Positions 751-53,400 of a DNA stretch of 64,000 bases are shown in pieces. This DNA comes from Bugula neritina. Its lineage: Eukaryota > Animalia > Bryozoa. The position numbers and the translations under genes were made by a program. The stretch is taken from contig OZ037768.1 of assembly GCA_964035545.1 (NCBI GenBank), positions 9,022,741-9,086,740 on the forward strand, read 5' to 3'. Below the pieces are notes generated by a model, which saw only the letters and a list, made by a program, of their open reading frames with translations, searched no databases and had not been told where the DNA came from. Within the stretch, counting starts at the first letter, position 1, and each line of letters begins with the position of its first letter.

Positions 751-3574
751 ATGGCTGTCTGTAAGTATTAATATTATAAGACATATTGCAAAAAAAAAAC
801 AAAAAATATAAAGCTATAATTTAATGACAACTATTGAAACTTTTTAAAAATATTCAGAAGAAATATGGCTATGCTAGTTATACTAGTGTTGGGTTGTAAA
901 TTTGTTGCATCTGGGTATGCGGTTTTATAGTACAAGCTATATGAGCTTTTTTGTAGGAAGTCTATACAATTTTATAATGTGCTGCATACTATAGAGTGAG
1001 CTGTGCGATTTTATAAGTTTATTTATTAGCTGTATAAAAGTGTTATGTAAAAAATTATTGCTCTTCTGTGACATTGTAAATAAAAGGAAACTTTTATAAA
1101 AGCTAATCTTGTAAACTGTATATCTGGCTAAGTTATATGCAACTAGTTGTTTTAAAGTTTATAATGAATTACATTAAGTAACACATTTAAGCATACTAGT
1201 GCAGTGTTCCAACAAATAGTTATTTACACAATTAGTCATACGAATGCAAAATAATATAAAATACATATTATACTTAATGCACCTACTTATTTTTAAACCA
1301 ATGAGATGATCTTAAGTGAAATCAACTTTTTTTCTAGGTGCTTTCAAAATAATGGGCCAAGTATCTATTGCATTGGCATTATTCTCTGGACTGCTGATAG
1401 ATGGAATGCCTATTTCTGACAGTACAGTAAACAGCCGCTTGAGTAAGTTTATAAAGTCTTCTCAGTATTAGCAAGTGATTGTCCAGTTACAGTATGTGTG
1501 CAATGATTACAATGCATCTCATCTATTAGAACTGCTCTGTGAAGGGAGCTTTTATCTTGCTTCTGTTAGTTTTTAATGCAGTGATATGAGCCCCACAATT
1601 TTTTCAAGTTTAGACAAAATAATATACACAATTGCATTGTACAAAGTATATTATATGCATTAAGTAATATATTGATGTATATGATCATCATAATGATTCT
1701 ATGTCTCATTAGACAGTATATGAAATCCTACTAAATTTTTTTCAAAGTTTTATATTAGCTGTTAGACAAATATTTTTAAGTGTAATAACTGTTAACATAG
1801 CACAAAATGACTACATGCACTTTTTTAATATATTAGTGAATTATTAAATTTTGAGAACAATAAAAATAATATAATATAGCAGTGTAAATGAGCTCTATGA
1901 ACACAATAACCATTGCAACTCACAACTTTTTAAGTAGATACTACAGAGCTCTACAGACAAGCTGAGTCTCTTACTATATTATTTGATACAATATAATAGC
2001 AAAGCTATTTTGTTATTAAGAAAGAAGCTGGCAAGACTATGATTGGAGAAATCCCACCGAGAAAACTAGCGGAAGCAATAATGGAAATCTCAATAAAGGT
2101 GGAGAAAATGGTAACATAAATGGTAATGATAATAATAATGGTACAAATGGCAACTTCAATGGCAATGAAAACATGGGAGAGTTGAATGGGAATGCAAATG
2201 GAAATATGAACACTGATGGTTCTAATGGCAATGTCAATGGCAATGGAAACGCTGATGGCATTAATGGTAATGGAAATGGTAATGACAACAACGACGGAGT
2301 AAATGGTAATGCAAATGGAAACTCCAATAAGGATGGCAAAAATGGCAATGGTAATGGTGATACTAATGGAAATGGCAGCAATGGTAATAGCAATGGCAAC
2401 CACAATAAAAATGGGGAGAATGGTAATGCAAATGGCAATGAAAATTCAAAAGGTGAAAATGGAAATTACAATGGCAATGATAACAAAAATGGTGAAAATG
2501 GCAATGATAATGGAAATAGCAATGGTAGAGGAAAAAATGGCAATGTCAATGGGAACAATAACAATGGAGGTGACAATGGTAATGCTAACGGCAACAGTAA
2601 CACAAGGGGTGAAAATGGTAATGATAATGGCAGCAACAATGAAGAAGGCTCTAATGGGAACGCTAATGGTAATAATAATAACAGAGGAGAAAATGGAAAT
2701 TCTAATGGAAATAACAATGCAAATGGTGAAAATGGGAATGTTAATGGTAATGGAAATGAACGAGGAGTTAATGGAAATGATAATGGGGGACAAAACTTGA
2801 ATGGTGAAAACGGCAATGATAATGGAAACAATAATGTGAGAGGAGAAAACGGCAATGGAAATGGCAATGGCAATAATGAAGGAGAAAATGGTAATGAAAA
2901 TGGTAACCTCAATGGAAATGGTGATAATGGCAATGTTAATGGGAATGATAACAAGAGTGGAACCAATGGAAATGAAAATGGTCAAAGCAACAGACGCGGG
3001 GACAATGGCAATGCCAATGGTAATGGGAATGAAGCTGGAGAAAATGGGAATAACAACGGTAACAGCAATCAGCGAGGAGAAAATGGCAACTTTAATGGTA
3101 ATGGCAATGGCGATGGAAAAAATGGAAATAACAATGGTAGTAGTAATCAGAGAGGAGACAATGGCAACTTTAATGGTAATGGTAACAGCCATGGAAATAA
3201 TGGGAATAATAATGGAAGTGGAAATACAGGAGGCAGTAATGGAAATGGCAATGGCAATAACAATGGTGAAAGCGAAAGTAAGTTATAGTTGCAATATATG
3301 CATTTACGATATATTTCTTTGCTTTAATGCAGTTTCAATTAAGAGTAAATGCATGCTTTAAACTGATATGTTGTATTTATAACCAAAGGGGTATAATATA
3401 CTTTTTGTTTATGTTAAGTATTAACATATTCACTTGATTATTAACCTGCGAGTTTCTATCAGCAACAATTGACAAAATATAAGCCACATGAAATATAATA
3501 GAACTGATGATTTTTTTTCAGGTTTTGAGTCCAGATTTAATTATGAGGGCTACCAAAGAAGATATAGTTGGTAA
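751..3574 (+). CDS. Secreted Asn/Gly-rich 13-aa tandem-repeat protein (474 aa, uncharacterised)
   Basis: Exons 751-760, 1338-1442, 2021-3277, 3522-3574; all GT-AG, all introns phase 1, frame open throughout (1425 nt). Protein: MAVCAFKIMGQVSIALALFSGLLIDG (signal-peptide-like) MPISDSTVNSRLKR (furin-type RxKR) SWQDYDWRNPTEK, then 31 x 13-aa repeats, then ESFESRFNYEGYQRRYSW*. Includes track ORF 2173..3288. Confidence 0.85.
2065..3273 (+). repeat. Coding tandem repeat, 31 x 39 bp (13 aa, consensus x-N-G-N-x-N-G-N-x-N-x-x-G)
   Basis: Units such as ENGNANGNENSKG, ENGNYNGNDNKNG, DNGNANGNSNTRG; no indels in 31 units although codons and variable positions differ between units. Confidence 0.95.
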
Positions 3575-5313
3575 ATAAATTGTAGTGAATTGATTAGAAA
3601 GTGAGTGAATTTATTTAATATAATATGCGTATACCAGTGATCGATACTGATTATTGTGGTGCAATATGACATACTATGTAGTGACATTGTATTATTTATC
3701 AGCATAATATAAATTTTGTTACTCACTGACAAGATGTAAAGGTACAGATTTAAGAGGTGTTTTAGCATATAAACACACCTTTTTAGGAGAAAACTACATT
3801 CAAGTTTTAAAAGTTTTCTGAAAATGGTGCAATGAATTATACTATTGCTGAATAATTCAATAGGGTTGATTGTTGATGAAACCTATTACAGCTGTTAGTT
3901 CAAATGGTTTCTCTTTAAAGACAATCACCAAGTAGATAACATGATTATAGTTGCAATGAGGCATCTCATAGTAAAAGCAATACCTACTATTATATTGTAT
4001 ATAGGAAATTTGAACAATGTGAATGTTTATAGTATCTAGTGTAATAGAAAGCAAACAAGATACTTGATAATGTCTTTATCTATTCAGCTTGAAGTCTTGG
4101 GTTTTTAATAATGAATTGAATTACTGAACTGTTTTATTTGTTTATTACTCATAAAATTAATGCTTCATTAGCATGACTAATAAATGCATTTCAAAAATAT
4201 ATAAACCATGCATGTTGTAGACATTGCATTCCTTCTTTATTGTTTTTAAACATTAATAAAATTTGCTAGCAGTTCTCAATAGCACTTACCAACAGCACTT
4301 TTAAATTTTGAAATATTATTACTATAAATTAATTGCATAGCAACAGCATAAATAAAGCAATGATAAGCATAAAAAAGTCATATATGGAAACCGTCAGCTG
4401 TCAAAGCTAAGCACAGATCTTAATGACCTGCTGCGGGCTTCTAAAATTACTTGATTAGTATTATTATTATTTTCACCTGCTGTAAAAAGAAATTCTAGTA
4501 ATTATGCTATACAATATAAGTTTTTGACAAGATGCAAGAAAACAGTGTTGCAGTGTATTTAATCAAAACCATCAACAATAAAGTGGAACAATAACAGAAT
4601 GAACCTGTAATATAGTACCCTCAACGCAAGTCTCTGTTTAAAGTTTCGCAATTAATTTATTAGAATATTTACATATTCATACATAAGAGTAATAAGCATA
4701 ATCATGTAAAGAATAGAAGCGTAATAAAAAATAACTAGAACAATGAGTTAATGCCTTATGGTCATTAGAAATAAGTTTAATTATTTGGATATAATGAAAT
4801 TTACAGATATTTGTAATAAGGGAATGCATGTTGCAAACACATAAATTATAAATGTTACAAAAATAAATTGAGCAATTTTATAATCAGCAGTCACGGCCAT
4901 GCAACAATTAATAAATATATATTCATTTAGTTTGACCAAAAATTGGTATGGGCAAACTGTAACAGCAAAACTTGTTATATTTTATATATGCACTGTTGTA
5001 TTATGCAATGCACCTTTTCACACAAGAAAATGTGCATGTTGTGCCCGTAAATGTCCAGTATCATATGATATCTACATATAATTATAATTTCTATAAATAG
5101 CTATAATCATAACATATAGCTGGGTGTATAGTTTAGTAGTTCAAAATCAAGCCAAATTATTTGACATATTAACACATATGCATACTGTATATAGTCTATG
5201 TGTAGTACAACTTAGCTTGTATGGCATGTTATAGTTTTGAAAAACGAGTAAGTTAAAATACTTTAAAAATAAAACAAGAAATATTTTAATTGATTTAATA
5301 CAAGCTAATCAAA

Positions 5314-6661
5314 CTAGTATTGAAAAGCAGGCGGGGATGTATAATTTACACGTCTATGTACAGCTTTTTCCAACTGCTGTCTTGCTTGGAGTTTTCTATT
5401 ATTACTCTCATTAAATGCTGCGATAATGTTTTTCAGAGAATTGTCCATACTCTTCTGAATGTCATGAACATGATCGTTGAGATTCCTACGAGGGCTATTA
5501 GCTGCGAACGAACTTTTAATTGGCTCTGGTTGTGCTTCTTCATCCTCCTAAAACAAATCAATATGATACGATTCAGTGTGTAGTAGCATATGTGTACACT
5601 AGTTCATTACACGTACAGTATGTAGTAGTATAGATGTACACTAGTCCATTAATTGTAGTATAAAGTACATATTGCAAATTTCCAGTCAACAATTTGACAC
5701 CTACTAAAATAGTTAGCATTTACCTCAAGTAATTCTAGCATCATGATATATGATTACATAAATGCATTATATAATATTATGACACTTTTTAAGTTGGCAC
5801 AGCAAGTGTATGCAGTGCAATACTACAAAAATAACCATATTGAAAAACAATAATGTGAATACATAAACAGTATAAGACTGCGAATCAACCTTTGTATATA
5901 AAGTAAGTAAGTGAGTAAGAAAGTAAGCAAGTAACTGAGTAAGTAAGTAAGTGAGTAAGCAAGTGAGTAAGTAAGTAAGTAAGTGAGTAAGTAAGTAAGT
6001 AAGTAAGTGATTAAGTAAGTAAGTAAGTAAGCAAGTGAGTAAGTAAGTAAGTAAGTAAGTGAGTAAGTAAGTGAGTAAGTAAGTAAGTAAGTAAGTGAGT
6101 AAGTAAGTAAGTGAGTAAGCAAGTGAGTAAGTAAGTAAGTAAGTAAGTGAGTAAGTAAGTGAGTAAGTGAGTAAGTAAGTGAGTGAGTGAGTAAGTAAGT
6201 AAGTAAGTAAGTAAGTGAGTGAGTGAGTAAGTAAGTAAGTAAGTGAGTAAGTAAGTAAGTGAGTAAGTAAGTAAGTAAGTAAGTGAGTAAGTAAGTGAGT
6301 AAGTAAGTGAGTAAGTAAGTAAGTGAGTGAGTAAGTAAGTGAGTAAGTAAGTAAGTAAGTGAGTGAGTAAGTAAGTGAGTAAGTAAGTAAGTAAGTGAGT
6401 GAGTGAGTAAGTAAGTAAGTAAGTGAGTAAGTAAGTAAGTAAGTGAGTAAGTAAGTAAGTAAGTAAGTGAGTAAGTAAGTGAGTAAGTAAGTGAGTAAGT
6501 AAGTAAGTGAGTGAGTAAGTAAGTGAGTAAGTAAGTAAGTAAGTGAGTAAGTGAGTAAGTAAGTGAGTAAGTAAGTAAGTAAGTGAGTAAGTGAGTAAGT
6601 AAGTAAGTGAGTAAGTAAGTGAGTAAGTAAGTAAGTAATTGAGTAAGTGAGTAAGTAAGTG

Positions 6662-6692
<31 letters not shown>

Positions 6693-9600
6693 GAGTAAGT
6701 AAGTAAGTGAGTAAGCACTTACATGATCACTCTCCACCACTTTACTAAATGGACTAGAGTGGAGCTGTTTAGGTTCTGGAGTGGATTCATTTCTACTAGA
6801 ATGGTCATTCCATGCAACTTTCTTTTTATGAAGTGACTGCAAATACAACCTTATCTATAAGTCACATCATCAACAGATCAGATGTATAATATATATAAGT
6901 AAAGTTTTTAGTTGAGTGTTCTTTTTTTAAAAGCTGATATGCCAAGTAATACAATACTTCAAGAGAGAACATATTGGTACAAGTTATGCATAACTGATGA
7001 GTCATTTATCAGTAACAGAAGAATTAGTTAAACTTAATAACTGAAGCAGAGGCACATCTTCTCTCACCTCATCCGACTGGTGGTGGTGTTCTGACGAGTG
7101 GACAAGTCGAGGCGTGACAGGAAGTAACTCAGGAGTATCCATCAGAGATGGGAAGTCAAACTTGGGCAGTGAGCCACTTCTTCTCAATGCTTTTGCTTTC
7201 TGGAAGTTGATTGGTTCAAACTTGGAAGGTTCCGGAACAGGTCCAGTTATTGGAATAACAAAACTGCCAGTTCCGCCACCTAGAAAAACAAAAAAGAAAT
7301 GTACACACATATTTACATTAATATATCAGTTGAAAAAAAAAATCAATTTTGAAAATAACAGCAACAACTGTTTCAATATTAAGAGTTGAGTTAAGTGATC
7401 ATGACAATACATGTCATTTTCCTATTCGAATGACTCTATTGTTATAATTACTTATTGCATAACGTTTTGTTGTATCACATTGACACGTTTACATAACAAC
7501 AATAAAGTATTTATCTTCTTAGAGATGATGCAACTAATTAGAGCATTGTAACTGTCAGCTGCCAGTACAGACATTAAAACTCACCCAAAATATGCTTGTG
7601 TGGAGCAAGTCGGAAAACAGGATAATCAGTGCTGTGCGTGCTCGCAGGTAGAACATTGGAATGCTTGGGCGGCGTCTTGGCCTTTCTTTTTTGCTTTTGA
7701 CGTTTATCGGAGCGTTGTAGTTCTTCTTCCAACTCTTTCTTAGCTTCTTGCAAGAACCTGGCCATAATGTCATCATTGCTGCTGAGGTTGTGCTTGTCTA
7801 AAAATACATGAATTTAACTATATAATTAGACAGAAAAGTCAAGCCAAACTATTACAGTGTTTTATATATAGAAGACTGCAGCAAGAAGTGGTAAATAACA
7901 AGTCAAGTAAACAAGGAATCAAGCAAGCACACAGATATGCAAATTATTTTAACACAAGCAGATTGTTTCACAACAACTGCTCTATACACAAAATTAGGCA
8001 ACAAACTACATAGTTTGACTGCATGTTCATAACTTAGTATATGTCAAACTTGTGTAGGACACAAGAGCAAAATACACTAACACTAATTTCTCAACAACTG
8101 ATCTTCCAAAAGTCTATAACATCATTGTACGTGAGTTTAATACGAGAAATAATCATACTGTAGAATGAGAATGGGTCTTGTGGAGGTCGATACTGCTGCC
8201 TACGAGGTGTGACCTCAGTACTTTTCTTATCTATACCAGAGGAAGTAGCTCGTGGAGTTTCTTCTTTGATGGGCGTCATTGTGGGTGACTTGTGACCACC
8301 TCTATCTACTGTGATACCTATGAATAAAAGCTTACATGAAATATATGACACAATGCTTAAAAATATAAGTAAGGTATACGCAGACAGCCTCTGACATGTT
8401 GTTGGAAATTTAATAGCACTATTAACATTAACATCAAAATTAAATTAAGGACTAGTAGGAAACAAAGCTATAATGTTGATCGCAGAAAAAATTATACGTG
8501 AAATTTTTTTTCAAGAAAAATTAAAAAAAATCCTAAAAATTGTATTGTGAAAGTGTGAATACAACCGGACTACATTACCTGAATCATTAGAGCTAATGCT
8601 GTGTATACTTGGTAAGGAGGGACTTCGCTCCTCTGTCTGAACTGGTTCTTCAGCAGGTTTCTCATCAGAAGTCCTGAAGTGAGAAACCATATGAGGTACA
8701 AACTGCCCTGTTAATCACTACACCAAATATACTCTACACACACAATAAAGAAGAGCTAAGCACGTACATAGCAGGTAATATAGGTGGAAGTGAGACTGAA
8801 GAGGAAGTTGACTTGATGCTCTTGGATGAATCTTCGCGACTGTAGCTGCGTTCAATAGGTGGGAATCTCGAGCCCGAATCAGGCCGGATGTCATCTAACA
8901 AAAAACAAAATTAATTTCATAAATTTCATAAAACAAATATAAGCTTGTGTAGAAATAATATACTTTAAGGAACTTACATAACAGAAAGGTGAGATGTAGA
9001 ATCAATGAAGACTAGATATTTAATATCATTGGTAAATCATTCTAATAATATCAATCTACGGTAGATGCAGCTATAGTCTAAGCAAGCAGCGATGCTCAGA
9101 TGCCAGGAGCAGCATGCTACTAGTTGTCATGCAAGCTAACAAATAATGTTGTTTAATTGCATACCAACATTATATTGTACACACATGATCACCAATTGCA
9201 TTCATTGAATTATCAGCTATGAGTGTCATTGATCAGGGGCATGCTGGCTGAAAGCCTTGTTATAGATTATTTATGCATAAATAGCAACTACTGACTTGTT
9301 ACAGAAACTGCCACTATAGAATAAAAATTGATTTTCAGCATTATGTTTCGAAATGTCAGAATAATTAGCAATAATGAAGCAAGGTACAAAAGACACAATG
9401 CTATTCTGAACACGACCTGATCAAAGAAATGAAATAGCTTTCACCTCAATTCTAAAAACTATGCTTGCTGAGGAATCAAATATTATAGATTATGCAATAG
9501 TAACCGTTAATTTGTGTCAGAACATGTATTAGAACAAGAAACTATTATTTAGTGTTAGAGTTATACAAAACTCAGTGAAAAAAGCGTCTTCAACTATATA

Positions 9601-18600: not shown

Positions 18601-21600
18601 CATTACATTTTGGTTTAGTTGGGACAGGTTCCTTGGACTTTGCGCTGGCTGTTGCAACTTCTTTTGATTTGGAGGGAGTAACTGTCCCTTCTTTAGCCTT
18701 AGTAGCAGCAACTGAACTTTCTTTTTGTTGTGGACCAAGATTTTTGGGCTCTTTTGCTTTCGATACAGACTTTGGTACAACTTTCACTTCCTTAGGTTTT
18801 TCTGCAGGTGTTTCTGGAGTTTTGGTCAGTTGGCGTTGAGGTGCGGGTGTGGGCTCTCGGCTACTATCGTCGCTAAAATATTTCAACTCAGTTGATACAG
18901 ATGCTACACAAAGTAGAAACTATATCTCCCAACTGATCTACTCAAACCTTGGCTTGTCACTTTAACAACTAAACATGTGTCCATACACCAAAACTCATGC
19001 AGGAATATCTATGGCATAACACATGCAATAGATGTAACTCCAGTGGCGTGTTCCACCTATTTGTTTCAAGAAGGTAGTGCCACTTAGTTCTCTAAAATAC
19101 AGAGTTACTTGTATTGAGATTCGTTTGGATTTCTGCTGTACACTACGATGGTACATCACTTTAAGAGTAATTTATTTGACTTACTCATCCAAGTCTAGAT
19201 TTGCAAATGGATTATTTTGTCCCAATGACGCTGCCATGATGGCTTGATGCCTTTCTTGAATGGAGCTGGTGGAGGCGATAGCTACAATTAAGTAAATATA
19301 TCAAAGACACGAACCCGATGTGCATTGGACAAAAATTAGGAAACCATAATTTAGAAGTAATAAACTGCAGGGTTGAATAAAAAAAGTATAAATGAACTAA
19401 AATAAAATCTTATTGTCACAATACTATTATAAGTTATTGTTGATTTGAATTCTATGGTCAAGTTTATGAAACTATCGAGACATGACTCAGATATTATTTT
19501 ATGTTATGAATCAAACTGGGTAGCACACAAGTGAGGCCTATAGTGTAAAGTGCTTACATTTTGGTTTCTTATTGCTAGATAAGGTTGAAGTTGAGGCTAG
19601 CACAGACTTAGGGACAGGAGCTGGGGTAGGGGGTTGCTGGAAAGCTGGCGTTGGGTAGCCATATGGAGCTGAAGGAGGGTAGCCGTAGGGAGCATTTGGT
19701 GGATAACCCGCTGGAGGATAACCCGCTGGTGGGTAACCAGTTGGTGGAAAACCTGGTGGTGGGTAACCCGCCGGTGGGTAACCCGCCGGTGGGTAGCCTG
19801 CCGGTGGGTAGCCTGCTGGAGGATAACCTGCTGGTGGATAACCTGCTTGCGGGTAACCCGCTGGTGGGACTCCGTACGGAGCTGCATGCCGCTGAGAAGG
19901 CTCTGCTGAAAACGATATACATATTTGACTCAACACAGTGATAAATGGCAATGACTTGGTCTAAACAAGTGCTTGACATCACAGTTACAGTTGCAGAACA
20001 GAGCATTACAATGTGGAGGAAGCCCTCAGTAGAACTGATTTAGTCAGCGTACTATTTTGCTGCCACTCACCTCTAGACGCTGACCTGTCCACAGACAGAT
20101 CTGTAGGATCATTGACAGGCAGAGGAGCCACAGCCTTCTTTGGCTTAGTCCGCACAGGCTGCAAGCAAAGTTATTACAATACATAGAAGACAACTCACAT
20201 TACACAAACAGACCAACACAACTTCCTTATGTAGAAGTTAAAACAATGTCAAGTGAATATTACAGTTTAGCATTTCAGTGCAGCCAAATTCTATAAAAAA
20301 GAAGAAAGGATTTAATTAATATAAGCAGCGATTAATTTTTCTACCTGTACAGAATCATATGTAGTCATGCTGTTCTATAAATCAAAAGTAATAGAGTATA
20401 GAATGTTAGTACAGAATTTAATCTAGCCAAATTTATAAGACTTGGCGGATTGTGTTATCTAAGATTTTTTTACAACAAATATGGAATTTTGTTCCAACAG
20501 TGTATTTAAACAACACAGAATAGTGAACATAAAAACATAATATTTCCTTATTGGCTAAAAAAATGAAAATAATCTTTTAGACTTTTCTATGCTACTCTGA
20601 AAGCTGCTCAATTTCAACCAAGAGGAATTAATTTATTCGGACACAGTATACTGTATGCGTACTATAAACACACTTATTTACTCAGATATAATACATTAAC
20701 ATGACACTGTCTTTCTCTTAAAACATGAAATTTATGTTAATTACAGATTTTTTGCTTGCAGTCTGTAATGTTGGAAAATTTTTTTACCACTCTGAGAGCT
20801 TTTTTGTTAAAAAGGATGTTTTCAATAAAGATGCCCAACAGCAATATACTAGAGTCTACACGCCTTAAAGGTTGGCTGTTAGTAACAAAAGAAGAATTCA
20901 AAGTAGATAATTTAGTTAAAAGTAAAAACAACACGACAATGCAAGTACATGTACACCTACCCCATCAATATCAGCATCAACGTCATGCAGGAGTCTCCTT
21001 AGTTTAATAATATCCACAGTAGACATCTTCCCATTGCGCTTAATAGAAATAGTTTTAGACACCTTGGAAGCACGCGACGTAGCTGAAGATGGAGCATTTC
21101 TAATCTTAACTGGGGAGGCATCAGACGCCGCCCCATCAGACGGTGGTTTTCGCTTCAGTATGCTAACATCTGACTCAGTGACTTCTTCTGGCATTATGTC
21201 TGCTAAATGAGCAAAAAACTTACTTATAAACTACCCGATAACATATGCATCATGCACTAGAAGATACGCACTCAGAGCTCTAAACTCACATTATGAAAGC
21301 AGCGATATGATAGGTTTACCTTGTTGTTGAGTTTGGAGTTTAATATCTGGTTGAGATTCTAATTGTTTGTCTGTTTGTGAATCGAGATTAGTTTCCAACT
21401 GAGCTGCAGTGGATGTTTGAGACTGCGGGGCAAGAGGTAACTTAGTTTCAGTCTCTGACTTTAGATCAGTTACAGAAGGCTCTGGTGATTTCACAGAGCT
21501 GGTATTTTTTTCAAGAGCAACAACTGGTTCTGGAGTAGCAGGAGGGACACCTAATGGTGTTTCGCACCTGTATTCAGCAACTGAAGGGGGTGGAGTAGGA

Positions 21601-33600: not shown

Positions 33601-36600
33601 TATACATTAATTAATTTATCAATATAAATGGTGAAATAATACATGCAAATCTGCTGTTTTCAACTCAAAATTATTTTGTAATTCATTTTATCAGAAATGT
33701 GTTTGTATGAACATCATACAACTAAAAGAAACTTGAGTTGAAGTATCAAAAAGTTTATTTTGAATTTGTTTCAAGTTAAACCTAAGTTTAAATACCAATA
33801 CTTACCGTTTCCTTTGTTTTCAGTCTCTTCAAGCAACTCTTTTGAAGCACTCTCTGCCCAAGCCTTAGCTCTGATCTTGTTTTCCAGAGCCTTCTGAGCC
33901 CTTCGCTCTTCCTCTTCCTTCCTTTGCCTTTCTAGTCGCTCAGCTTCTTCTTTTGCCTTTCTTTCAGCTTCCTCTTTAGCTTTCTTTTCAGCTAATATTC
34001 TTTCTTTCTCAGCTCTGAATACGATCACACAATATTTAATTTCAATTGAATACAGGTTTTTAATTTAGCACAATTTATGTATAGAAATCTAAATGCATAC
34101 ATGTACAGCATATGAAAACAAATAAACTGCAGAGCCACTACTTAATTTTACTGACATAATAGCAATATTTTGAAAAATATGGATCGTGAACGTAATTTAA
34201 GAATTTACAAAGCAAATCAGCTGACTTTCTGAATTACAGTATCCTCCCATACAACACAAAGTCAAAAATGTACTAGTAAATAAAACTTATGCATGAACAC
34301 TACGTAGAAGTGAACCAGAATGTTAGCCAGGTTTATTTATCAATTAACTACAGACACTTGATACTATTGTTATAACTGAGCTTGACTAATTAAAATTTAA
34401 CCAAAGTGACGCCATCAAAACAACATACCTTGCTTGCTGCCTTTTAGCTTCAAGAATTGCTTCTTTCCGCTTCTTTTCTTCTACGATTTTTTGACGGCTT
34501 TCGGCTGCAGCTAATTTTCTAGCTAAAGCAGGGTCAAATTTTCGTTCTGCTTCATTTTTAGCTGGCTTAGAGGTTGTGTGAGAAGTTTTTACAGTCAGTT
34601 GTTCATTGGCATCTGGCAACTTATCATTTTTAGTAATATTGGCAGTTTTATCTTTTGGCTGATTGCTAGCTTCAGCTACAATGAATTTAGTCCCAGCCTG
34701 ACTTTGAGGTTCTTCTGAGACTATTGTACCAGATCTTTTCCCATTTGCTGTAGAATCTCCACTATCTGGCACCAACAAACTGCTTTTTGGGATGTAGGCT
34801 GAAAGTTCATTTTCCAATACTGGTTGCTTTGCTTCAATATTTGGCAAACCTTTTTCTCCTTTTACTGAAAGCTTTTCACTATCTGCAACTGGCTTTACAC
34901 CCTCTGTAAGTGGCTCTACACTCTCTGCAGGTGACTTTACACTTTCTGCAGGTGGCTTGACACTTTCTGCAGATGGCTTGACACTTTCTGCAGGTGGCTT
35001 TACACTTTCCGCAAGTAGCTTTACACTTTCTGCATGTGGCTTTACACTTTCTGCAGGTGGCTTTGCACTTTCTGCAGGTGGCTTTACACTTTCTGCAGGT
35101 GGCTTTACACTTTCTGCAGGTGATTTTACACTTTCTGCATGTGGCTTTACACTTTGTGCAGGTGGCTTTACACTCTTTGCAGGTGGCTTTACACTCTTTG
35201 CAGGTGGCTTTACACTCTTTGCAGGCGGCTTTACACTTTCTGCAGATGGCTTTACACTTTCTGCAGGTGGCTTTACACTCTTTGCAGGTGGCTTTACACT
35301 TTCTGCAGATGGCTTTACACTCTTTGCAGGTGGCTTTACACTCTTTGCAGGTAGCTTTACACTTTCTGCAGGTGGCTTTACACTTTCTGCAGGTGGCTTT
35401 ACACTTGCTGCAGGTGGCTTTACACTCTTTTCAGGTGACTTTACACTTTCTGCAGGTGGCTTTACACTTTCTGCAGGTGGCTTTACACTTTCTGCAGCAG
35501 AAATGTGATGATTAGTCAGGTCACTTGGCAGAGGCATATTTTCAGGCTCAGTTAAACCTGCATTTACAGGTATGGATGCGAGTAAAGACTTTGAATCAGC
35601 TTCAGCTTTTTTAGGTGTAACTTCCAGGTCTGAGGACTGCTCTTGTTTCTGAATCTCAACGCTGTTTGATTTCAACAAAAGTGGCTCTTTCACATCAACA
35701 CTGGTGTTGGATTGCAAGTCATGATCAGCAGTATTTATTTTCAAATCGACATGCTCCACAGGCATCTTGTTTAGATTTTCGGTGAGTACTGATTTCATAT
35801 TGGCATCTGTTGTTGTTTTGGTTTTATGTAGTGAATGGGTAGATGCAGTTGGTTCAGCCTTTTTAATCTTTTGTTCGTCCTGAGTCGTGTTTTTATTCGA
35901 CTTATCTTTCATCAATTTACGGACATTAGTCTGATTTGTTGATGGCTTTGAACTCTTTCCAGCTGAACTTACAGGGAGTGCTTTGCTTGCATTTTTATCT
36001 GGAACTTGTGGATTTAGATTCAACTTCTGGTTATTTTGATTACCAACATTACTTGAAGATGATTTGCTAACAAGCTTTTCTTTTTGCCCCGAATCGCTTT
36101 GAGGTTTCGCTAAAGTTGAGGAGGACTTTCTACTCTTGTGGGAAGGAGGAGATAGAATAAACCTTCCAGAAGCACCGCTTGTTCGTTTGCCAGTGTTATC
36201 ACGCAGAAAAGGTCCAACATCATTAGACAAGAGAGAGTCACGCCCATTACTATGAGATTTTGTGTCAAGCACATGTCTTTCTGTTGAATTGCTTTTTGAT
36301 GTAGCATAAGGCATTTTAACTTTGAGATCTGACTTCAATTCTGACTTAGCATCAGTTTTTCTACTAGTTGTGATTATTGAGCTGTCTTTTGATGCAAAAC
36401 TAGACTTCTTTAGAACAGGAGCAGGCCCAAAATCTAAATGAACATCAGCTTTCTTCCCAGCTGTTAATCTTTCAAATACATTCTGTCGTCTTTGAGATGA
36501 CTGATTTGGTTTTTTAACATTAGAATCTAACACAGGTGTTTCAGTTTTTAACTTTTCTGTAGGCTTCACTGGATCATTTGTTGTGCTTGCATGATTAGTT

Positions 36601-39600
36601 GGGTTCTGATTATTAACAGAATTTGTATCAGAAGGATGAATTTTCACTGATGCATTAGGTGCAGTAGTAGGTTGTTTAGGCTTTGGCTCAATTGAATATT
36701 CTTCAAGCATAATCAATTCAAGTGGACTAGAAGGATTTGTGTTCGAAGAATTAATTTTTGCTGATGCAGCAGATGACTCAGAAACAGCAGGTGCAGCAGT
36801 GGATTGTTTAAAGTTCGGCTTAGTTGAATGTTCTTCAAGCATGATCAATTCACCTGCAGTAGAAGGATTGCCTAAAGCTGCATTTGACTGAGGCTTCTCA
36901 AATGACGATGGAATTTCAGGCTTTGAAGTCAGTTTATCTGAGCTTGAAGAAGGAGCTGCACTTACTGAACTGTTGTGAGTGTTTGTGCCTTCTTTTTTAT
37001 TAGCTGAATCAGAAAATGCTACAATACTTTTTCTTTTTGTTGAATCAGTGTTGGCTTTTTTAGTGGGCTGAGGTCTTCTAACAGCATCATGCTTGTCTTT
37101 GTATGTTGACTTTACTGAGCGACCTGTGGGAGCAGCATTTGACACAGTAGGGGCATTAGAACTTCTTGATCTATGCTTGTACAAGTCACCGGACCTGGCT
37201 GGTTTGAGCAGTGTTGAAGTATTATTTTCTCCAGCAACTAAAGAACTATTTATTTGGGGACTTGGAGCTTTCAAAGATTTTGAGACCTGTTTAATGGAAC
37301 TAGAATTCTTTTTTTCAGATGTTTCAGCTGCTGGGTCAGACAAGGCTTTTGACCTAAATGTTCTATCTAGCTGATTTCGGCTAGATGTACCTGAAAATGT
37401 AGAGAGTGTCGATTTTTCACCCTTTTTGAAATTTGAATCTGCTACAACATTTTCGGTATTGGCTGATGATGACAACTTATCAGCGCTCTGGTTATTATCT
37501 TTGCTTGCACTAGCCAAACCAACATTTGTTTTTCCTGAGCTAGGTTTATCAACAGCATCATTCGTTACAACTTGAGATTGTACAGATTTAATGTTGACGG
37601 TAATGTCAGTTTCCGCTGTATTAGATTCAGACTTGGATGCACCTGTGGTTGGGGATTTTGTTACTTTCGGAGCTGTTTTCAAACTCATTGTGTTATCATC
37701 CTTCAAGATCTGATGAGGCGCATCAGATTTTTCATGAGACTTTTTCTGTTGAGCATGTAAATTGTTCTTTGAAAGGTTTTGTGCTTCACCTGCTGATTTT
37801 AAAATAGAATGCGATGCTTCTATAATGACACCATCTTTAGAAGTTTTCTCATGAAGGGCCGAGTCTTTTGTGGGAGAAATTTCATTTTTTAGAGAATCTT
37901 TAGTTTTACTGCGTGCCAGATACTCTTGAGGAATTGTAGTTCGTTTAACATTGCCTGAGCTAGGTGTAGGCACAGAAGGCTTTTTTATAGGAACAGATTT
38001 CTTTGCAGTATGTGAAAGTGAAGATGCATAAGGACCTTTCTGACTATCAGGTTTTGTGGAAGTACTGGGTTTTGACACTTTTTCATTCAGTTTTGGTTTT
38101 AAATTTGGCTTTGGGCGTTGTGATAAACTTGGTACTTCAGCATCAGATTCGTGTATATTACTTGAAGGCAGTGGTGGTTTACTAGTTTCAACGACTGTAG
38201 GTGGCCTATTTGTTGCAACTGATTTTGTGTCAACTATTTCTGGTGTTTTTGATTGCTGAGCTAATGGAACCAGATCAACAGTTTTAGGAGTAGCTGATTC
38301 TTTTCCAATTTTGGTTTCAATTGAGCTAGAATTAGAGGGTGCAGGTTTAGTGAAAACTTGCTGTTTATCTGATTTCGCTTTTGAAGATGGCACATGTGGT
38401 ATATGGTTGCTTTGGATCAATGTTTTCTTCTTAAACCCAGACCCATACACTTTGCTTGGAACTTTTGGTGCAATAACTTTTTGTTGGTTGATTGGAGTCT
38501 TGGCTGAACTGTGTTCACTTTGCACGAGGAGAGATTTATTAGGAGCTGCAAGCGTTTTAGAACTATTTGTAGAGAGTGCTTTGTTAGAAAAGTGGTTAGT
38601 ATTTCCATCTTCTTTTCCAACAGACTGATCCGGTGTAGCAACAGACTTTTTTCCAGTATTTGTTCTCGCAGAGGGAAATTTAGCATTCTGAGAATGATGA
38701 GGATTTGAATGAGCATTCTTGGTACTTCCTGATTTTATCAATAAGTTGTCTGAGACTTCCTCCTGTGATTGTGTATTGGAGTTTGATAAATCTTCAAATT
38801 CTTTCTTCCGCAAAGGCTCATTTGCCATAATTCCATGAACAGTACCTTGTTTTTCATTACTTCCAGGCATTTGAAAAGCTTGAGAACCAGTTTCTTCAAA
38901 AGTATTGGGTCTTTTGACCTGAGATTCATTGGGCTCAGAAACATGGGGCTTCACTGTATCAGGATTGCTAGTAATTTTGGGAGGGGAAGACTTTTTAACC
39001 TTTAATTCTTTTAAAGAGGTAGCACTTTTTACCTTTGTTGATTCTTTACTCGATAACAAACTTTTTTGTTTCACAGAAAATTTATCCCCGGAATTTACTA
39101 GTTTACCAGTGATTTGTACGTTCTGGGATTCCTTTACATCAAGAGCAGCAGGCTTTTTATCAGTAATCAAAAGTTTCTGCTTTTCAGAGTTTTCTGGAAC
39201 AGAACTATTCAACTCCATTGGAACATCTTGCAGTTTAGTATTAACATTACCTTCTTGGTTAGCACTAGAGATGTCATGTGTCTCATTTTTCTGACTCACA
39301 GGCAAGTTTTCATTCAAATTACCTTTTCCCAATTTTAGATCTTTAATTTTGGCAGAATCTCTCACATCAGTCGACTCTTTTGTCTTAGTTTCAAATACAT
39401 GCCTCCCACCTCCATGAGGAATCTTAACTGTTGGTTCTTTTGAAACCAATGTATTTTTATCAGCTGAAACATTAGACTGTTTGGAATCAACACCAGTAGA
39501 CTTGGAACCAAGATTTTTGTGCGTTGGCAAGTTCTGCAGCTTCTTGTGTTGTTTTGGCACACCCTGTTGTGATTTTATATTAGAGCCGCTAACAGAACCT

Positions 39601-42464
39601 GTTGTAGCAAAGCTCTTTACTGATAAGGATTTGCTTTGGTTTGCAACTGACTGGTCCGAAACTGCTACAATATTTTGAGCATTAGTTGGCTTGAAAGAAC
39701 CTTTGACAGCAACACCCTTCTCAAGCGAATTAGGACTATGTGATTCTAATATGGAAGACTGATCAGCAATAGGAATTTTCAGCACTTGGACTGGATTTGA
39801 TGCTGCTGAGTGAGATGGTTGTTTTGGAATAGAAATAGGTTGTTTTCCACTAGTGGCCACTTTTTTATTCAGATTTGCATCTTCAGTAGTAACAGAAAAT
39901 TTACTAGGCAGATGAGATTGCTTTGAGGTGTCTGGCTCCTTATTTGCCACTTTGCTTAATGAAGGAACAAATTCTTTTGAATCTGCATTTGTATTCTGCA
40001 CATTTGCTACTGATGAAGTCAAGACATTTAAGTTGCTAGGTTGCTTTGAAAATTTCTGCGATTTTCGAGTCACCACACCTTTTGAATCTACATCTTTTTG
40101 CACTGTGACAGCTTTATTGGTTGCATTATCAACTCTTTTTTCTTCAGGTGGTTTAGAGAGTTGTTTTTTAGCAACGGATGAGGAAGCAGGCGCGTTCAGT
40201 TTAGTATCTGCTTTGGATGTAACACGCACTTTTTCTGAGATTTTGTTTTTTGATTGTTCTTTTAAATTACCAGAAGGTTTTGAATTTTCAAGACTTGGTG
40301 GTATTTCATTTTGTTTTAGAAGAATTGGGGTGTCAAGATTCTTAGTTGACTGAGAATTTTCTTCTGAAAGAGATGGGCCAACTGAAGTTGGAACAGTAGT
40401 TGATTTTCCAGCAACAACAGCCTCATTCAAGTTGTGAGAGTGCTTTGAGCTCACAGGATTTTCAGGTTTAGCATCAGCTTTTACGGAGGATAAGTCTAAT
40501 TTTGCAGAATCATTTGAAATAGCAACTGATTGTCTTGGTGACTTTTGTTTCTTTACTGAAGAAACATCTTTTGTCGAAGGCTTGACTTTAGTAGATGCAG
40601 AACTCTCAGGTATTGATTGATTCGTTGCAGGCTTTGTTTTTTGTAATTTAGAAGTTGTCTGCTTAGTTAATGTATCAGATTCCAAAGTTACAGGCTTTGT
40701 ATTTTTTGAATTAGCTTTGGTTTCTAATGCTTCATCATCAGCTGGTGCCACATCAGTTTTTGACTCTAATATTTTTTCCAAATTGATTACTTCACCAACT
40801 GAGACATGCTGATCAGGAACTGTTTTCTTTGTAGTCGCAGTTTCTGTTGGTTTAAGTTTTCCTTTGGCGGCAACAGGTAGTTTATAAGCTTGAAATGTTT
40901 TAGAATGAGAAGGTTTTTTGGGTGTGTTTAATGGTCTGGAAATCGAATCATCCTTGGAATCAGCAGGTGAATTTGACAGACCAGAAATTTTAGAATTTGA
41001 ACGCTGTTGCAATTTTGGATCTGTGATTGACTTCAAAGGCTGTGTTGGTACTACAATTGCTTTTTGCTCACCAGTTTTCTCTGATGTAGTAGGGATAAAG
41101 CTATTTTCATGTGGTTCAGATTTTTCAGAGGAAGTAGGATCCACTGAAATGTTAGTTTTAGATATGGAAGATGTTTTTGGATTAGCAGGTTCTTTAGACA
41201 ATATCATCTTTTTGGTTTTTACTACATTTCCAGAAGCATCCTTTTTGACAGCTACTTTAGGAGGAGACAGTTGCTTAGAAGGAGAATGTTTGTCAGAAGC
41301 TACAGCTTTCTCTTCATGAAATGCAATGGTATTCAGTTCTTTTTTTTCCATAAGGTTCTTAACTACACCAGTTTTAGCTTTTTTTTCCAAACCATTCGGA
41401 ACAGCAGAGTCTTGAGATTTAGAGACTGGATTAGTTGTATTAACTTTTACTGACTCACTAGAATCTTTTGGGAAAGAAAAACCATTTTTAGCTTTTGATG
41501 CTTTTGGAATATCCTTAGTTTTAGCAAGTAGATTTTTTGGTCTTGGCTGCCCAGCAGTTGATTTTACAGATTGCTGGCCAATCTCTTTTGACGAAGCTGA
41601 CGTGTTCAACTTATCCTTTTCATCTAACTGATTGTTTGAAGTTTTCGCTTTTGAAGCCAATGATTCTTTAGGATTGCTAAGCACTTTTGAAGCAGGTAAT
41701 ACCTTTTTAGTACGCACATTAGAAATATTATTCTGTTTTGCTGATGTAGTGTGTCCATTTGGCGTGCTTTGTGAACCTGCAACTTTTGAAACAGACAAGT
41801 TTCGATCTTTGGAAGTTTTGGATGCTCTGGAAGTCAGAGAATTTCTAGATGGTGCCCTAGATTTAAACTGAGTTTTTTCTTGTCTTGGAGTGTGTTTATA
41901 CATCTCATATGCACTAGATATACTTTGCCTAGACTTGACGCCTGCAAGAGATCTTTGACGTTCAAATTTTGTTTTTAGTGGAGGACTTTTCAAACTTGAG
42001 TCAGGTTTCAGAGGCTCACTAGATTGCCCACCTACAGTCACTTGTTCAGCCTCATCAGTTAGATTGGGCTCTAAATTAACATCCGTTAATTTAGGTTCTA
42101 AATTAGCATCATCACTAATTGGAAGTGGGTCGGTATGAGGTACCGTATCTTCAACTTGTTCACCGGTTGAAGTGTTTGGCTTTGGATCAGGTACTACAAA
42201 CACAGTTATGTACTTCATAGTTGATCAAGTTGAACATAGAAAATTGCATTGTTTCATAAATTTCCATCAAACATAGACACATCTCCAGTTACTAGTTTGG
42301 ACATGCGAGCAGTAAGCTATAGCAGTGCAATTACTTAGCCAACACAAACACACTTATGATACATACTATTATTTTGTTCAAAACTGTATAATACATGAAT
42401 TCAATGGAGCTGATTGTAGCAAATGTTTCATACCTGCTTCTTGCTTGCTGGCAGTATCACCCAT
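5314..42464 (-). CDS. Giant multi-exon, largely disordered Lys/Ser/Pro/Glu-rich protein (~5,950 aa, uncharacterised)
   Basis: Phase-compatible GT-AG exons, 5' to 3': 42464-42434 (MGDTASKQEA), 42193-34429, 34014-33806, 32723-32520, [link unresolved, e.g. 32077-32040], 31723-31490, 30333-30201, 29478-29304, 28814-28507, 27852-27676, 27093-26677, 26195-25789, 25498-25402, 25003-24906, 23539-23335, 23150-22209, 22009-21320, 21202-20961, 20158-20071, 19905-19558, 19281-19185, 18872-18607, 18346-18281, 17919-17863, 17252-17154, 15731-15667, 15214-15194, 15030-14631, 14498-14377, 14191-13847, 13757-12537, 11955-11748, 11444-11136, 10887-10730, 10617-10362, 10252-10175, 9918-9808, 8894-8768, 8673-8579, 8317-8159, 7797-7585, 7279-7068, 6836-6723, 5547-5314 (stop TAG). 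No recognisable globular domain. It could be two genes split near 31.7-32.5 kb. Confidence 0.75.
5901..6715. repeat. Compound tetranucleotide microsatellite (GTAA/GTGA)n, ~200 units, in the last intron of the giant gene
   Basis: Continuous AAGT/GAGT mosaic of ~815 bp; it produces the artefact LTYL/LTHS ORFs. Confidence 0.97.
17373..17759 (-). mobile_element. Probable solo LTR (387 bp) in an intron of the giant gene
   Basis: Ends TGTAGTGAA...TTCACTACA (9-bp perfect inverted termini, TG..CA) flanked by a perfect 5-bp direct repeat TCTAT (17368-17372 and 17760-17764). Two AATAAA on the - strand near 17475-17490 suggest - orientation, but AATAAA also occurs on + so orientation is tentative. Confidence 0.7.
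19650..19880 (-). repeat. Coding (A)GYPP pentapeptide repeat, ~13 x 15 bp
   Basis: Exon 19905-19558 encodes PPAGYPQAGYPPAGYPPAGYPP...GYPPNAPYGYPPSAPYGYP. Confidence 0.9.
21530..21930 (-). repeat. Coding 72-bp (24-aa) proline-rich repeat, ~5.5 copies
   Basis: Unit CETP(L/F)GSPPPTP(P/L)PTPPPSVAE(A/Y)R in exon 22009-21320. Confidence 0.92.
30472..30581 (-). mobile_element. tRNA-derived SINE (5' portion)
   Basis: On - strand: A-box-like TGGTCAAGTGA and B-box GGTTCGAATCC, followed by non-tRNA body GGCCATTGCTGATGTCAGGAAGGGTATTCGGTTATAATTG shared with the copy at 62295. Confidence 0.75.
30640..31430. repeat. Intronic AT-rich minisatellite, 49-bp unit, ~15 copies
   Basis: Unit AAACAAACACTACCATATAGATATACATATACACTACATTATATAATAT repeats at 30801, 30850, 30899 and onward, with variant longer units toward both ends. 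Confidence 0.93.
34429..42193 (-). CDS. 7,765-nt single internal coding exon (exon 2) of the giant protein
   Basis: Track ORF 34386..42218 (2610 aa). Acceptor TTTGTAG| at 42194 and donor |GTATGT at 34428 are phase-compatible with both neighbouring exons. Confidence 0.9.
34887..35495 (-). repeat. Coding 21-bp (7-aa) repeat A(E/K)SVKPP, ~29 copies
   Basis: AESVKPP/AKSVKPP/AESVKSP array within exon 2. Confidence 0.95.
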
Positions 42465-51849: not shown

Positions 51850-53400
51850 TGTCGATACCTGTCGATGTTATTTCCACACTGGACCTCCCTAGAGGGAAGA
51901 AGGGGTGTGCCTCATATAAAAAACTAAGTTGTCAGTACTTGGACAGTAGTCTAAAAAGTGTTAACATTCTTGTGCAGATTAACTCAACAGGCTAACTAGC
52001 CTGTCTGTGTGTGATCAGTGCTGATCCTCATATCTCTTATTGTTCGTGGGAGAAAACTATAAAGATACCCATTCCTGTTCGCTCTCACTGATCTGGGAAA
52101 TCCTGAAACCTGAGACCGAGTCTGTACAGTGCTTGTGGTCCGCTGATCTAGAAAATCATTATAGGCAGCACTCAGAGTTGGATGTTGTTCTTCCTTGGAC
52201 AATATTTTTAGAAGAAGGCTGATGCGTCGGCTTTTCCTCCTTAGATCAAGCGGCTCCAAACACAGCTTTTTCATCTCCTCCCCAATATCAGTTCTTCCTT
52301 TGCTGTTAGAGATAAAACGCACAGCATCTGTTTGAACATTCTCCATTATACTTATATGATTTTTGCTAGATGGGTCCCAGGCTGCACTGGCATATTCCAA
52401 GTGTGGGAGACAGAGGGCTTTGTAGGCAATAAGCTTTGCTCTCCTGGGGGCCCAGTAGAGTGCACGTTTTATCATACCTAATTGCCGTTTTGCAACAAGA
52501 ACCTTTTTTAGGATGTGTTGGTCAAATTTACAGTCTGATTGCAGTGTTACACCAAGGTATTTTGTTGAGTCAACATGATCTAACACTGATCCACTAAGCT
52601 TGTATTGGGGAGTGTCGGTCTTAGGGTTAAAGCTGATTATCTTGCTCTTGGAGATGTTAAATGACATTCCCCACTTATTCGCCCAAGTACTAAGAGAGTC
52701 CAGGTTGCGCTGAAATCTCTTACAGTCTTCAGATGAGGAAATTTCTTGGTAAACAAGTGTGTCATCGGCAAAAATAGCACAAGAGCAGTTGAGACACTCA
52801 GGAAGATCATTTATAAAGACTAAAAAAAGTACCGGCCCTAACACTGATCCCTGTGGTACACCTGAGCAAACCGGCTTTGGATCCGAGCTGCAGCCATGTA
52901 ACACAACACGCTGCTTTCTGTCTGTAAGAAAGTTGTGAACCCATCGTAGCAGATAATTGTCAACATCGGCAATTTGAGAAAGCTTCTGTAGCAGAAGTCC
53001 ATGCGGGACCCGATCAAATGCCTTGGTAAAGTCTAGCACAGCAGCATGGACAGTCTTTTGGTTATCGATAGCATACAGAATGTCATGCATAGTTGCACAG
53101 ATCTGCGTCTCACAGGGGAGGCCTCTTCTGAAACCATGCTGCCTGTTGTTGAGCTTTGTGTCAATCTTTTCTAGCAGGTTTCTCAGGACGATGTGTTCCA
53201 AAATCTTGCAAGGAATGCTGGTCAAGGATATTAGACGGTAGTTATTGACACTGACCGTACTTCCTGATTTGTGAAGTGGTGACACATTGGCTCTTTTCCA
53301 GTCCAATGGAAGTTGCCCAGTTTGAAGAGAAACTTGAAAAATCTTACTCAAGCATGCAGCGGTAAGTTCAATATCTATGCTCAAATCAGCTTTCCCAATG
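51850..53400 (-). mobile_element. 5'-truncated non-LTR retrotransposon (LINE; CR1/L2-group-like) with reverse transcriptase ORF 51996-53384
   Basis: RT motifs WKRANVSPLHK, NYRLISLTS, QHGFRRG, LDFTKAFDRV, GVPQGSVLGPVLF, FADD, KYLGV; C-terminal PHLEYASAAWDP and SFLPRTIRD. No endonuclease domain. ~145-nt 3'UTR ending in a short tandem (ATCGACA[G/A]GT)x2 tail. Confidence 0.93.

Follow-up and report, generated by a model that had tools for sequence, protein, structure and literature searches.

A transcribed Asn/Gly 13-mer repeat gene of the bryozoan Bugula neritina and a candidate β-roll fold for its product

We describe a gene on the plus strand of a 64,000-nt stretch of DNA from the bryozoan Bugula neritina (the window, in whose positions all coordinates are given) that is transcribed and spliced, and that encodes an uninterrupted series of 13-residue repeats built largely from Asn and Gly. 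This gene is referred to below as the 13-mer gene. Both the length of its repeat unit and eight of the 13 positions within it, five Asn and three Gly, are under strong purifying selection. We propose, with about as much confidence as doubt, that the product is a secreted β-roll with rungs of 13 residues and ladders of stacked Asn, which serves as an extracellular structural or matrix protein of the animal.

The surroundings of the 13-mer gene are AT-rich eukaryotic sequence with GT..AG introns, and reading of the sequence gives a model of four exons whose phases are consistent throughout (Table 1). Evidence at the RNA level comes from contigs of four public runs (X1 to X4), which stem from the same organism and from two studies; the RNA label of these runs is itself a guess, and the contigs represent processed RNA because the introns have been removed from them. 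The joint 3277->3522, with GT..AG borders, is borne out by contigs from three of the runs (X2, X3 and X4), and the joint at about 1442->2021 by contigs from two (X1 and X3). Furthermore, a contig of X1 that starts at about 743 omits 577 nt between about 764 and 1342, which is exactly the predicted length of intron 1; the aligner placed this joint 4 nt off, and GT starts both sides. Since the contigs reach 3618 and beyond, the 3′ untranslated region extends to at least 3618. The 13-mer gene is thus transcribed and spliced according to the four-exon model, introns 2 and 3 being observed directly and intron 1 being matched by its length, and the three junctions anticipated in a preliminary description of this DNA are accounted for.

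Table 1. Exons, introns and coding segments of the 13-mer gene
Feature	Position	Strand	Content
Exon 1	751-760	+	Start codon, M-A-V and first base of a split Cys codon; GTAAGT donor at 761
Intron 1	761-1337	+	Predicted, 577 nt; AG acceptor at 1336-1337
Exon 2	1338-1442	+	Signal-peptide-like segment and short polar pro-segment ending in N-S-R-L; GTAAGT donor at 1443
Exon 3, whole	2021-3277	+	1257 nt
Exon 3, N-terminal cap	2021-2106	+	Aromatic/charged S-W-Q-D-Y-D-W-R-N-P-T-E-K and degenerate 13-mer (2068-2106); transcribed
Exon 3, repeat core	2107-3276	+	30 in-register 13-residue units NGNxNGNxNxxGx, 1170 nt
Intron 3	3278-3521	+	GT..AG, 244 nt; joint in contigs of X2, X3 and X4
Exon 4, coding part	3522-3574	+	17-residue aromatic/basic tail S-F-E-S-R-F-N-Y-E-G-Y-Q-R-R-Y-S-W and TAA stop

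Splicing also supplies an N-terminus that the list of open reading frames misses, as the preliminary description had noticed and as the translation of exon 2 and the spliced contigs bear out. The translated exon 2 carries a basic Lys, then a 13-residue hydrophobic core (V-S-I-A-L-A-L-F-S-G-L-L-I) and then D-G, and in this respect looks like a signal peptide. Read on through the split Lys codon into exon 3 as far as its first Arg, the terminal N-S-R-L of exon 2 gives R-L-K-R, a furin-type motif, after which the mature protein may start at S-W-Q-D-Y. This start was read by eye, as were the split codons at the exon joints (Cys, Lys and Ser), and single-exon products were used for the searches and structure predictions described below.

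The exon-3 product (2023-3276) has 418 residues, with 171 Asn and 112 Gly making up 68% of the total. It carries a net charge of -24 with 45 Asp/Glu residues, contains 84 Asn-Gly dipeptides and six N-x-S/T sequons, and has no Cys. The composition count also agrees with the earlier statement that the repeat core is free of Pro, Cys and Trp, the single Pro and both Trp being located in the N-terminal cap.

Constraint on the 13-residue unit

When the frame that is open over 2020-3285 is cut every 13 residues, the 31 consecutive units claimed before are recovered as 30 canonical units and one degenerate unit, with no indels. The unit can be written as N1 G2 N3 x4 N5 G6 N7 x8 N9 x10 x11 G12 x13. 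Gly in columns 2 and 6 and Asn in columns 5 and 9 are present in 31 of the 31 units, Asn in columns 1 and 3 in 30 each, Gly in column 12 in 29 and Asn in column 7 in 25; columns 4, 8, 10, 11 and 13 vary freely. These counts equal those of the preliminary description once its register is moved by one residue. Tandem Repeats Finder reported periods of 39, 78 and 117 nt, and the identity of the free columns was 0.22 at a lag of two units versus 0.10 at a lag of one (permutation p = 0.0014). Column 11 is Arg in alternate units across most of the C-terminal two thirds of the array, and the units form a two-unit (26-residue) super-repeat.

On either strand, the array leaves all frames largely open, and an open frame therefore proves nothing. 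Conceivably, the array could be a non-coding, purine-rich minisatellite of 39 nt, in which the three forward frames and the reverse frames stay open by chance. The variation among the units, however, has a periodicity of three bases: across the 39 columns of nucleotides, conserved Asn and Gly codons are invariant at their first and second bases (0 bits of entropy), and the third bases of the three Gly codons have entropies of 1.85-1.93 bits. Spliced contigs with GT..AG introns link the array in frame to the signal-peptide-like exon and to the tail exon, and the ratio of nonsynonymous to synonymous changes (dN/dS) given below is equally at variance with non-coding DNA. This explanation is left with next to no probability and was rejected.

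Neighbouring units match at the Gly third bases in 0.25 of comparisons, and since this agreement is at the random level, the units are saturated at silent sites without any change in length. At the protein level, 144 of the 150 residues in the five Asn columns are Asn and one is Asp, and 88 of the 90 residues in the three Gly columns are Gly. Asp is thus nearly absent from the Asn columns, although a single transition converts Asn to Asp and although Asp and Glu are common in the free columns.

The transcript contigs provide an independent view of the same constraint. They differ from the window by about 5% and thus derive from another haplotype or a sibling lineage, and they contain no gaps over 2072-3277 (X2, 1206 nt) and 2043-3119 (X3). 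Out-of-register indels in alleles, which the preliminary description had named as evidence against its proposal, are accordingly absent from a transcript with about 5% divergence over 1206 nt. Among the 39 differences listed (28 further exist), 28 are synonymous and 11 are replacements; the 11 replacements among those listed all lie in columns 8, 10, 11 and 13, and none lies in the eight conserved columns (binomial p = 2.5e-5). The same differences between the diverged transcript and the window yield a rough dN/dS of about 0.09. Outside the array, both differences visible in a loose contig end of X1 at the start of exon 4 are synonymous, and one listed difference in exon 2 replaces Ser by Thr within the signal region. 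Together, the codon entropies, the transcript comparison and the dN/dS ratio verify that the unit length and the five Asn and three Gly positions are under strong purifying selection at the protein level, rather than being products of slippage.

Related repeats within and outside Bugula neritina

At the codon level the unit pattern is rare in the animal's own genome, with 37 forward matches versus three in the control. Outside the 13-mer gene it was found at C2 25.56, 25.67-25.69 and 26.04 Mb, at C3 24.89 Mb and at C4 23.43 Mb. These five loci contain many Asn/Gly exons of secreted type with an NGNxNGNxN core and a dominant period of 13 or 26 residues, and the 30 tandem units described here combine this core with a Gly-containing loop of four residues. 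Judged by its repeats, the 13-mer gene is a member of a multigene Asn/Gly 13-mer family of its own genome, which has no match to described families. The 13-mer gene holds its whole array in a single exon, whereas the C2 paralogues are split over many exons of 45-175 residues; its loop Gly occupies column 12, as opposed to column 11 in the C2 genes; and among the loci seen its array is the longest and the most regular. The paralogue on C4 (23.426 Mb) was matched in the protein search at E = 1e-5, the match being confined to the repeats, and mixes spacings of 13, 14, 15 and 16 residues. Perfect register is therefore not a rule of the family, and holds within the protein described here. When the signal exon, the N-terminal cap and the tail were compared with six paralogue loci by tblastn, nothing beyond chance was found.

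Two observations were made on further repeats of this kind. At the C3 locus (24887000-24895000, positions 1643-1876 and 3884-4345) there are two kinds of unit, which makes the rung length unequal from exon to exon: a 9-residue variant, NGNxNxGxx, which corresponds to the 13-mer minus one NGNx, is found in one exon, and seven near-identical 13-mers ending in W-G-S/D-N in another. In addition, deep contigs of 1-2 kb from X2 and X4 (depths 785 and 1697) share only stretches of 20-35 nt with the window at 2262-3034, and these may be transcripts of other, far more abundantly expressed Asn/Gly repeat genes.

No characterised family matched the protein, in line with the preliminary description. Searches of Pfam with the exon-3 product and with exon 2 returned no family even at E = 10, and the sequence search of the PDB gave only a spurious low-complexity Asn/His match in a pyridoxal kinase. 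Pfam detected no carbonic anhydrase or other domain in the exon-3 product, so that the earlier remark on the absence of carbonic anhydrase holds, and the feature-based search of the ESM Atlas gave no usable match. A phmmer search over 1.84 billion representatives gave 18 matches, among which only P0002, P0003, P0009 and P0016 contain the motif. The matches P0004-P0008, P0010-P0015 and P0017-P0019 are unrelated proteins that merely have a period of 13 residues, and were set aside as artefacts of this period. Because such proteins were matched, the search itself favours a period of 13, and our claim is therefore limited to the existence of the unit elsewhere and does not extend to a universal preference for 13 residues. 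A word-indexed search with a 156-residue piece returned only P0009, whose contig is not from the Bugula genome and which aligns in the repeat alone (69-79%).

The strict 13-mer was found in the plant Salvia hispanica (XP_047967079/XP_047967070), where it lies between a signal peptide and a Root_cap domain (PF06830), in a protein of a metagenome-assembled Flavobacteriales genome (MCB9253027), in the mycorrhizal fungus Ambispora leptoticha (CAG8643519), and in the metagenomic proteins P0009 and P0016. The protein is thus not one of a kind, given both these foreign proteins and the paralogue loci. Two Salvia hispanica isoforms (P0001 and P0020) differ by exactly 26 residues, which equals two 13-mer units; the source wrongly names one of the isoforms a splA-like kinase. 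The foreign arrays resemble that of the bryozoan in the order N1 G2 N3 x N5 G6 N7 x N9 followed by a four-residue Gly loop, in the absence of indels and in the presence of two-unit super-repeats, and several of them follow a signal-peptide-like N-terminus. They differ in having 5-14 units versus the 30 found here, in placing the loop Gly at column 11 or at columns 11 and 12, and in their flanking domains, such as Root_cap in the plant. On sequence grounds, this recurrence would be compatible with common descent, horizontal spread or convergence.

Fold and role of the repeat protein

In its constant repeat length and its near-invariant five Asn and three Gly columns the array is as expected for a parallel β-solenoid. 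When 12 units were submitted to AlphaFold2 with an alignment of 18 rows, consisting of shifted windows of the same protein, paralogues and foreign proteins, a β-roll with 13 residues per rung was predicted (predicted local distance difference test, pLDDT, 66; predicted template modelling score, pTM, 0.55), in which strands of three residues and of one residue recur every 13 residues. An exhaustive structural aligner ranked as top matches of this model the YadA-type heads of trimeric autotransporter adhesins, which have 14-residue rungs (Z 10-14, root-mean-square deviation, rmsd, about 7 Å). The Ca2+-dependent antifreeze protein of Marinomonas (3P4G) was matched with Z 12.3 and an rmsd of 2.8 Å over 156 residues and the ice-binding protein (IBP) of Lolium (3ULT) with Z 11.4, RTX structures ranking lower (Z 7.8-9.3).

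We propose that the product would enter the secretory pathway through its putative N-terminal signal peptide, would probably be trimmed at R-L-K-R, and would be released as an acidic protein of about 430 residues, in which the uninterrupted array of 30-31 Asn/Gly 13-mers lies between short aromatic caps. Each unit would then form one rung of a very narrow parallel β-roll, with Gly residues making the turns and the alternating Asn residues stacking in hydrogen-bonded ladders in place of a hydrophobic core, while the five free positions would point to the solvent. The alternation of Arg at column 11 would avoid the stacking of like charges on successive rungs. The result would be a stiff rod of about 15 nm (30 rungs x 0.48 nm), the folding of which may be assisted by the Ca2+ of seawater. 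Such rods could be the elements from which an extracellular material is made, be it the cuticle or body wall, the matrix within the lightly calcified skeleton, or a gel or adhesive that the animal secretes. For a product that looks secreted, is transcribed and acidic, and comes from an expanded family, in a sessile bryozoan that makes itself a cuticle and a wall with light calcification, a role as a structural or matrix protein would be the most economical reading.

Several observations weigh against this proposal. For the single 418-residue sequence, AlphaFold2 gave a pLDDT of 36 without secondary structure; three of the five models obtained with the alignment scored only 37-52, the best reaching only 66. 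Several rows of the alignment are shifted copies, at least one of which was slid by MAFFT to its true position (100% identity), so that these rows are not independent. A Foldseek search against the PDB gave no significant match, with nothing below E = 5, and the shape search of the ESM Atlas matched an FG-nucleoporin, collagen-like proteins and other low-complexity repeats (TM 0.66-0.89). Since, moreover, structure prediction often turns random short tandem repeats into solenoids (bioRxiv 10.64898/2025.12.04.691947), the predicted shape may be generic for short repeats. Hydrophobic residues are nearly lacking from the protein, whose composition is that of a typical disordered or prion-like region, and the paralogue on C4 is irregularly spaced. 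A mild excess at even lags is seen at the silent Gly sites as well, and because the super-repeat thus also shows at synonymous positions, the two-unit block is at least partly a trace of duplication and no proof of a 26-residue structural unit. Finally, none of the 11 genome matches of the chitin-binding family CBM14 lies near the 13-mer gene or the C2 Asn/Gly clusters fetched, so that the 13-mer gene has no link to chitin from this side. Of the β-solenoid put forward in the preliminary description, the regular rungs of 13 residues were thus recovered with the alignment, and the single-sequence prediction and the generic shape matches speak against it, which leaves it weakly supported. We regard the β-roll fold as standing at about even odds, more on account of the fixed length, the Asn- and Gly-specific columns and the free solvent columns than on account of the model.

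The same low single-sequence confidence, the scarcity of hydrophobic residues in a product that is two-thirds Asn and Gly, the irregular paralogue, and a predicted shape that is common to known disordered repeats and easily obtained for arbitrary tandem repeats, would suit a secreted, intrinsically disordered low-complexity protein, functioning as a hydrated gel, lubricant, coacervate or adhesive precursor. Selection would then keep the composition and the spacing of sticky or charged residues, and the 13-residue period would be a legacy of duplication. A constraint on composition alone, however, leaves unexplained why indels are absent at synonymous saturation, why Asp, Ser and Gln are almost totally excluded from the Asn columns and Ala and Ser from the Gly columns, and why residue positions inside the unit are fixed in a pattern that recurs in unrelated organisms. 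Asn-Gly is the sequence most prone to deamidation, and 84 exposed sites of this kind would deamidate within days at the pH of seawater, which fits poorly with selection for Asn over Asp, unless the conversion is the point. Either the fold protects these sites, or the conversion to Asp/isoAsp belongs to the maturation of the material. On balance, we consider disorder a serious but clearly less probable explanation than not.

Bugulid bryozoans are lightly calcified, and a more specific role in mineralization comes into view. As a matrix protein of the biomineral, the product would use its acidic Asn/Gly array to bind Ca2+ or calcium carbonate, a function that has been proposed for the NG domains of molluscan pearlin/N16 and nacrein, and slow deamidation of Asn-Gly to Asp/isoAsp might yield a stronger polyanion after secretion. 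The net charge, the acidic residues and the many Asn-Gly dipeptides are compatible with such a role, and the best structural match at low rmsd is the Ca2+-dependent β-helix 3P4G. Also in its favour, the NG repeat domains of pearlin are thought to contact Ca2+ and crystals (PMC7677314). On the other hand, searches of Pfam and of protein databases yielded no pearlin, nacrein or other shell-matrix family as a homologue, the pearlin NG domains are dipeptide runs of 10-35 residues in Cys-rich proteins and not 13-mers, and no bryozoan skeletal proteome was found in the literature. The unit is furthermore present in the root-cap protein of Salvia, in the mycorrhizal fungus Ambispora and in bacteria, and because these organisms do not calcify, a mineral-specific role is weakened; we deem it rather improbable.

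The resemblance of the model to the Lolium and Marinomonas proteins might also suggest an ice-binding or antifreeze β-roll like those of ryegrass and insects, and rungs of 12-15 residues are typical of ice-binding β-rolls. This resemblance depends on a model of medium confidence, however, and the array has no conserved flat face that is Thr-rich, Ala-rich or hydrophobic, its outward columns being variable and charged. Bugula neritina is, moreover, a warm-temperate fouling species, and ice binding appears very unlikely.

Should the β-roll fold apply, the consequences would reach beyond this animal. It is conceivable, and we suggest it tentatively, that the 13-residue NGNxNGNxN-loop unit is a distinct and undescribed structural repeat, forming a β-roll that is among the narrowest and has a core made entirely of stacked Asn, which amounts to an intramolecular polar zipper whose turns are made by Gly. 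This unit would have been adopted, independently or by horizontal spread, in secreted proteins from animals, plants, fungi and bacteria, and in bryozoans it would have grown into a gene family for building extracellular material. As a further possibility under the polar-zipper reading, folding would shield the 84 sites of Asn-Gly, which would turn into Asp/isoAsp on unfolding or ageing, so that the material would contain a chemical clock. If folded as predicted, the product would be a natural protein rod on asparagine ladders, essentially without a hydrophobic core, that bears on the safe use of polar zippers and amyloid-like stacking in soluble secreted proteins and offers a simple 13-residue module for the design of protein materials. 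If disordered instead, it would show with unusual clarity how selection can act on the exact length of a repeat in a protein of low complexity. That the unit recurs in a root-cap protein of a plant, in a mycorrhizal fungus and in bacteria suggests a solution for extracellular surfaces that is general and has been overlooked.

For bryozoan biology, the product of the 13-mer gene, which is transcribed and under strong constraint, is a candidate for a component of the cuticle, the skeleton or the adhesive in a major fouling species. Literature searches on the motif, on Asn/Gly repeats, on the matrix proteomes of bryozoans and on Asn-ladder solenoids with 13 residues yielded no description of such a protein, and the extracellular matrix proteins of this bryozoan appear to be undescribed in the searchable literature.

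Window context and likeness to known systems

Other features of the window were noted in passing. Positions 5901-6715 are an (AAGT)n microsatellite of 815 nt with extreme GC skew (Tandem Repeats Finder periods 20 and 36, 87-89% matches), across which the minus strand has a long open frame of L-T-Y/H repeats; it is most likely non-coding. Also on the minus strand, an open frame of 2612 codons without a Pfam match (34389-42224), which contains an internal tandem repeat open in several frames (about 34800-35500), is preceded by a long series of Pro/Lys/Glu/Ser-rich open frames (about 10300-33000). Frame and series together look like a giant multi-exon gene for a low-complexity protein, possibly PEVK-like or MAP-like. 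A 483-codon minus-strand frame at 51999-53447 has a reverse transcriptase domain (RVT_1, E = 4e-34) and is a copy of a retroelement without long terminal repeats, and a minus-strand open frame at 19541-19960 with a P-A-G-Y-P run (Pro/Gly/Tyr-rich pentapeptides) is a candidate exon of a repeat protein.

Among known systems, RTX β-rolls and functional amyloids were compared with the 13-mer protein, which fits neither. The RTX β-roll is built on the nonapeptide GGxGxDxUx with a conserved hydrophobic position and an Asp ligand, as opposed to a 13-residue unit with no conserved hydrophobic or Asp position, and the functional amyloids, such as curli CsgA and FapC, have imperfect repeats of about 19-23 residues (CsgA) or more, with ladders of Gln/Asn. 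Pfam matched neither of the two, and FapC appeared only at a Foldseek E of 9.8 (TM 0.07). In molluscan pearlin/N14/N16 and nacrein/N66, the likeness lies in their being lophotrochozoan extracellular proteins with secreted Asn/Gly-rich segments. Their NG domains, however, are di- or tripeptide runs of 10-35 residues inside Cys-rich or carbonic-anhydrase proteins, whereas in the 13-mer protein the array is the whole protein, has a period of 13 residues and lacks Cys.

The ice-binding protein of Lolium and the antifreeze protein of Marinomonas are, like the predicted fold, narrow β-rolls with short rungs, the former with internal Asn ladders and the latter with Gly/Asx turns stabilised by Ca2+. 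They share no sequence relation with the 13-mer protein, have rungs of 14-15 and 19 residues, respectively, and belong to an unrelated ecology, and the 13-mer protein is without an evident ice-binding face. The YadA-type heads may come nearest in architecture; they are left-handed parallel β-rolls of 14-residue repeats, which have a conserved Gly and hydrophobic positions 5 and 7, and they are carried by an anchor in the bacterial outer membrane. BpaC, a solved β-roll with 14-residue rungs, has a hydrophilic Thr/Asn core with chains of Asn hydrogen bonds and a multi-layer super-repeat (PMC9543794), and according to the model with pLDDT 66 the 13-mer protein would share with it the very short rungs, the Asn hydrogen-bond chains on the axis, the super-repeat and the acidic surface. 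The two differ in rung length, 14 versus 13 residues, and have no sequence relation, and the YadA-type heads were matched only at the high rmsd given above; the 13-mer protein has no anchor and no Pfam match to such heads, so that the likeness is one of predicted shape only. YadA heads are obligate trimers on the bacterial surface; the 13-mer protein is encoded by an animal gene with introns.

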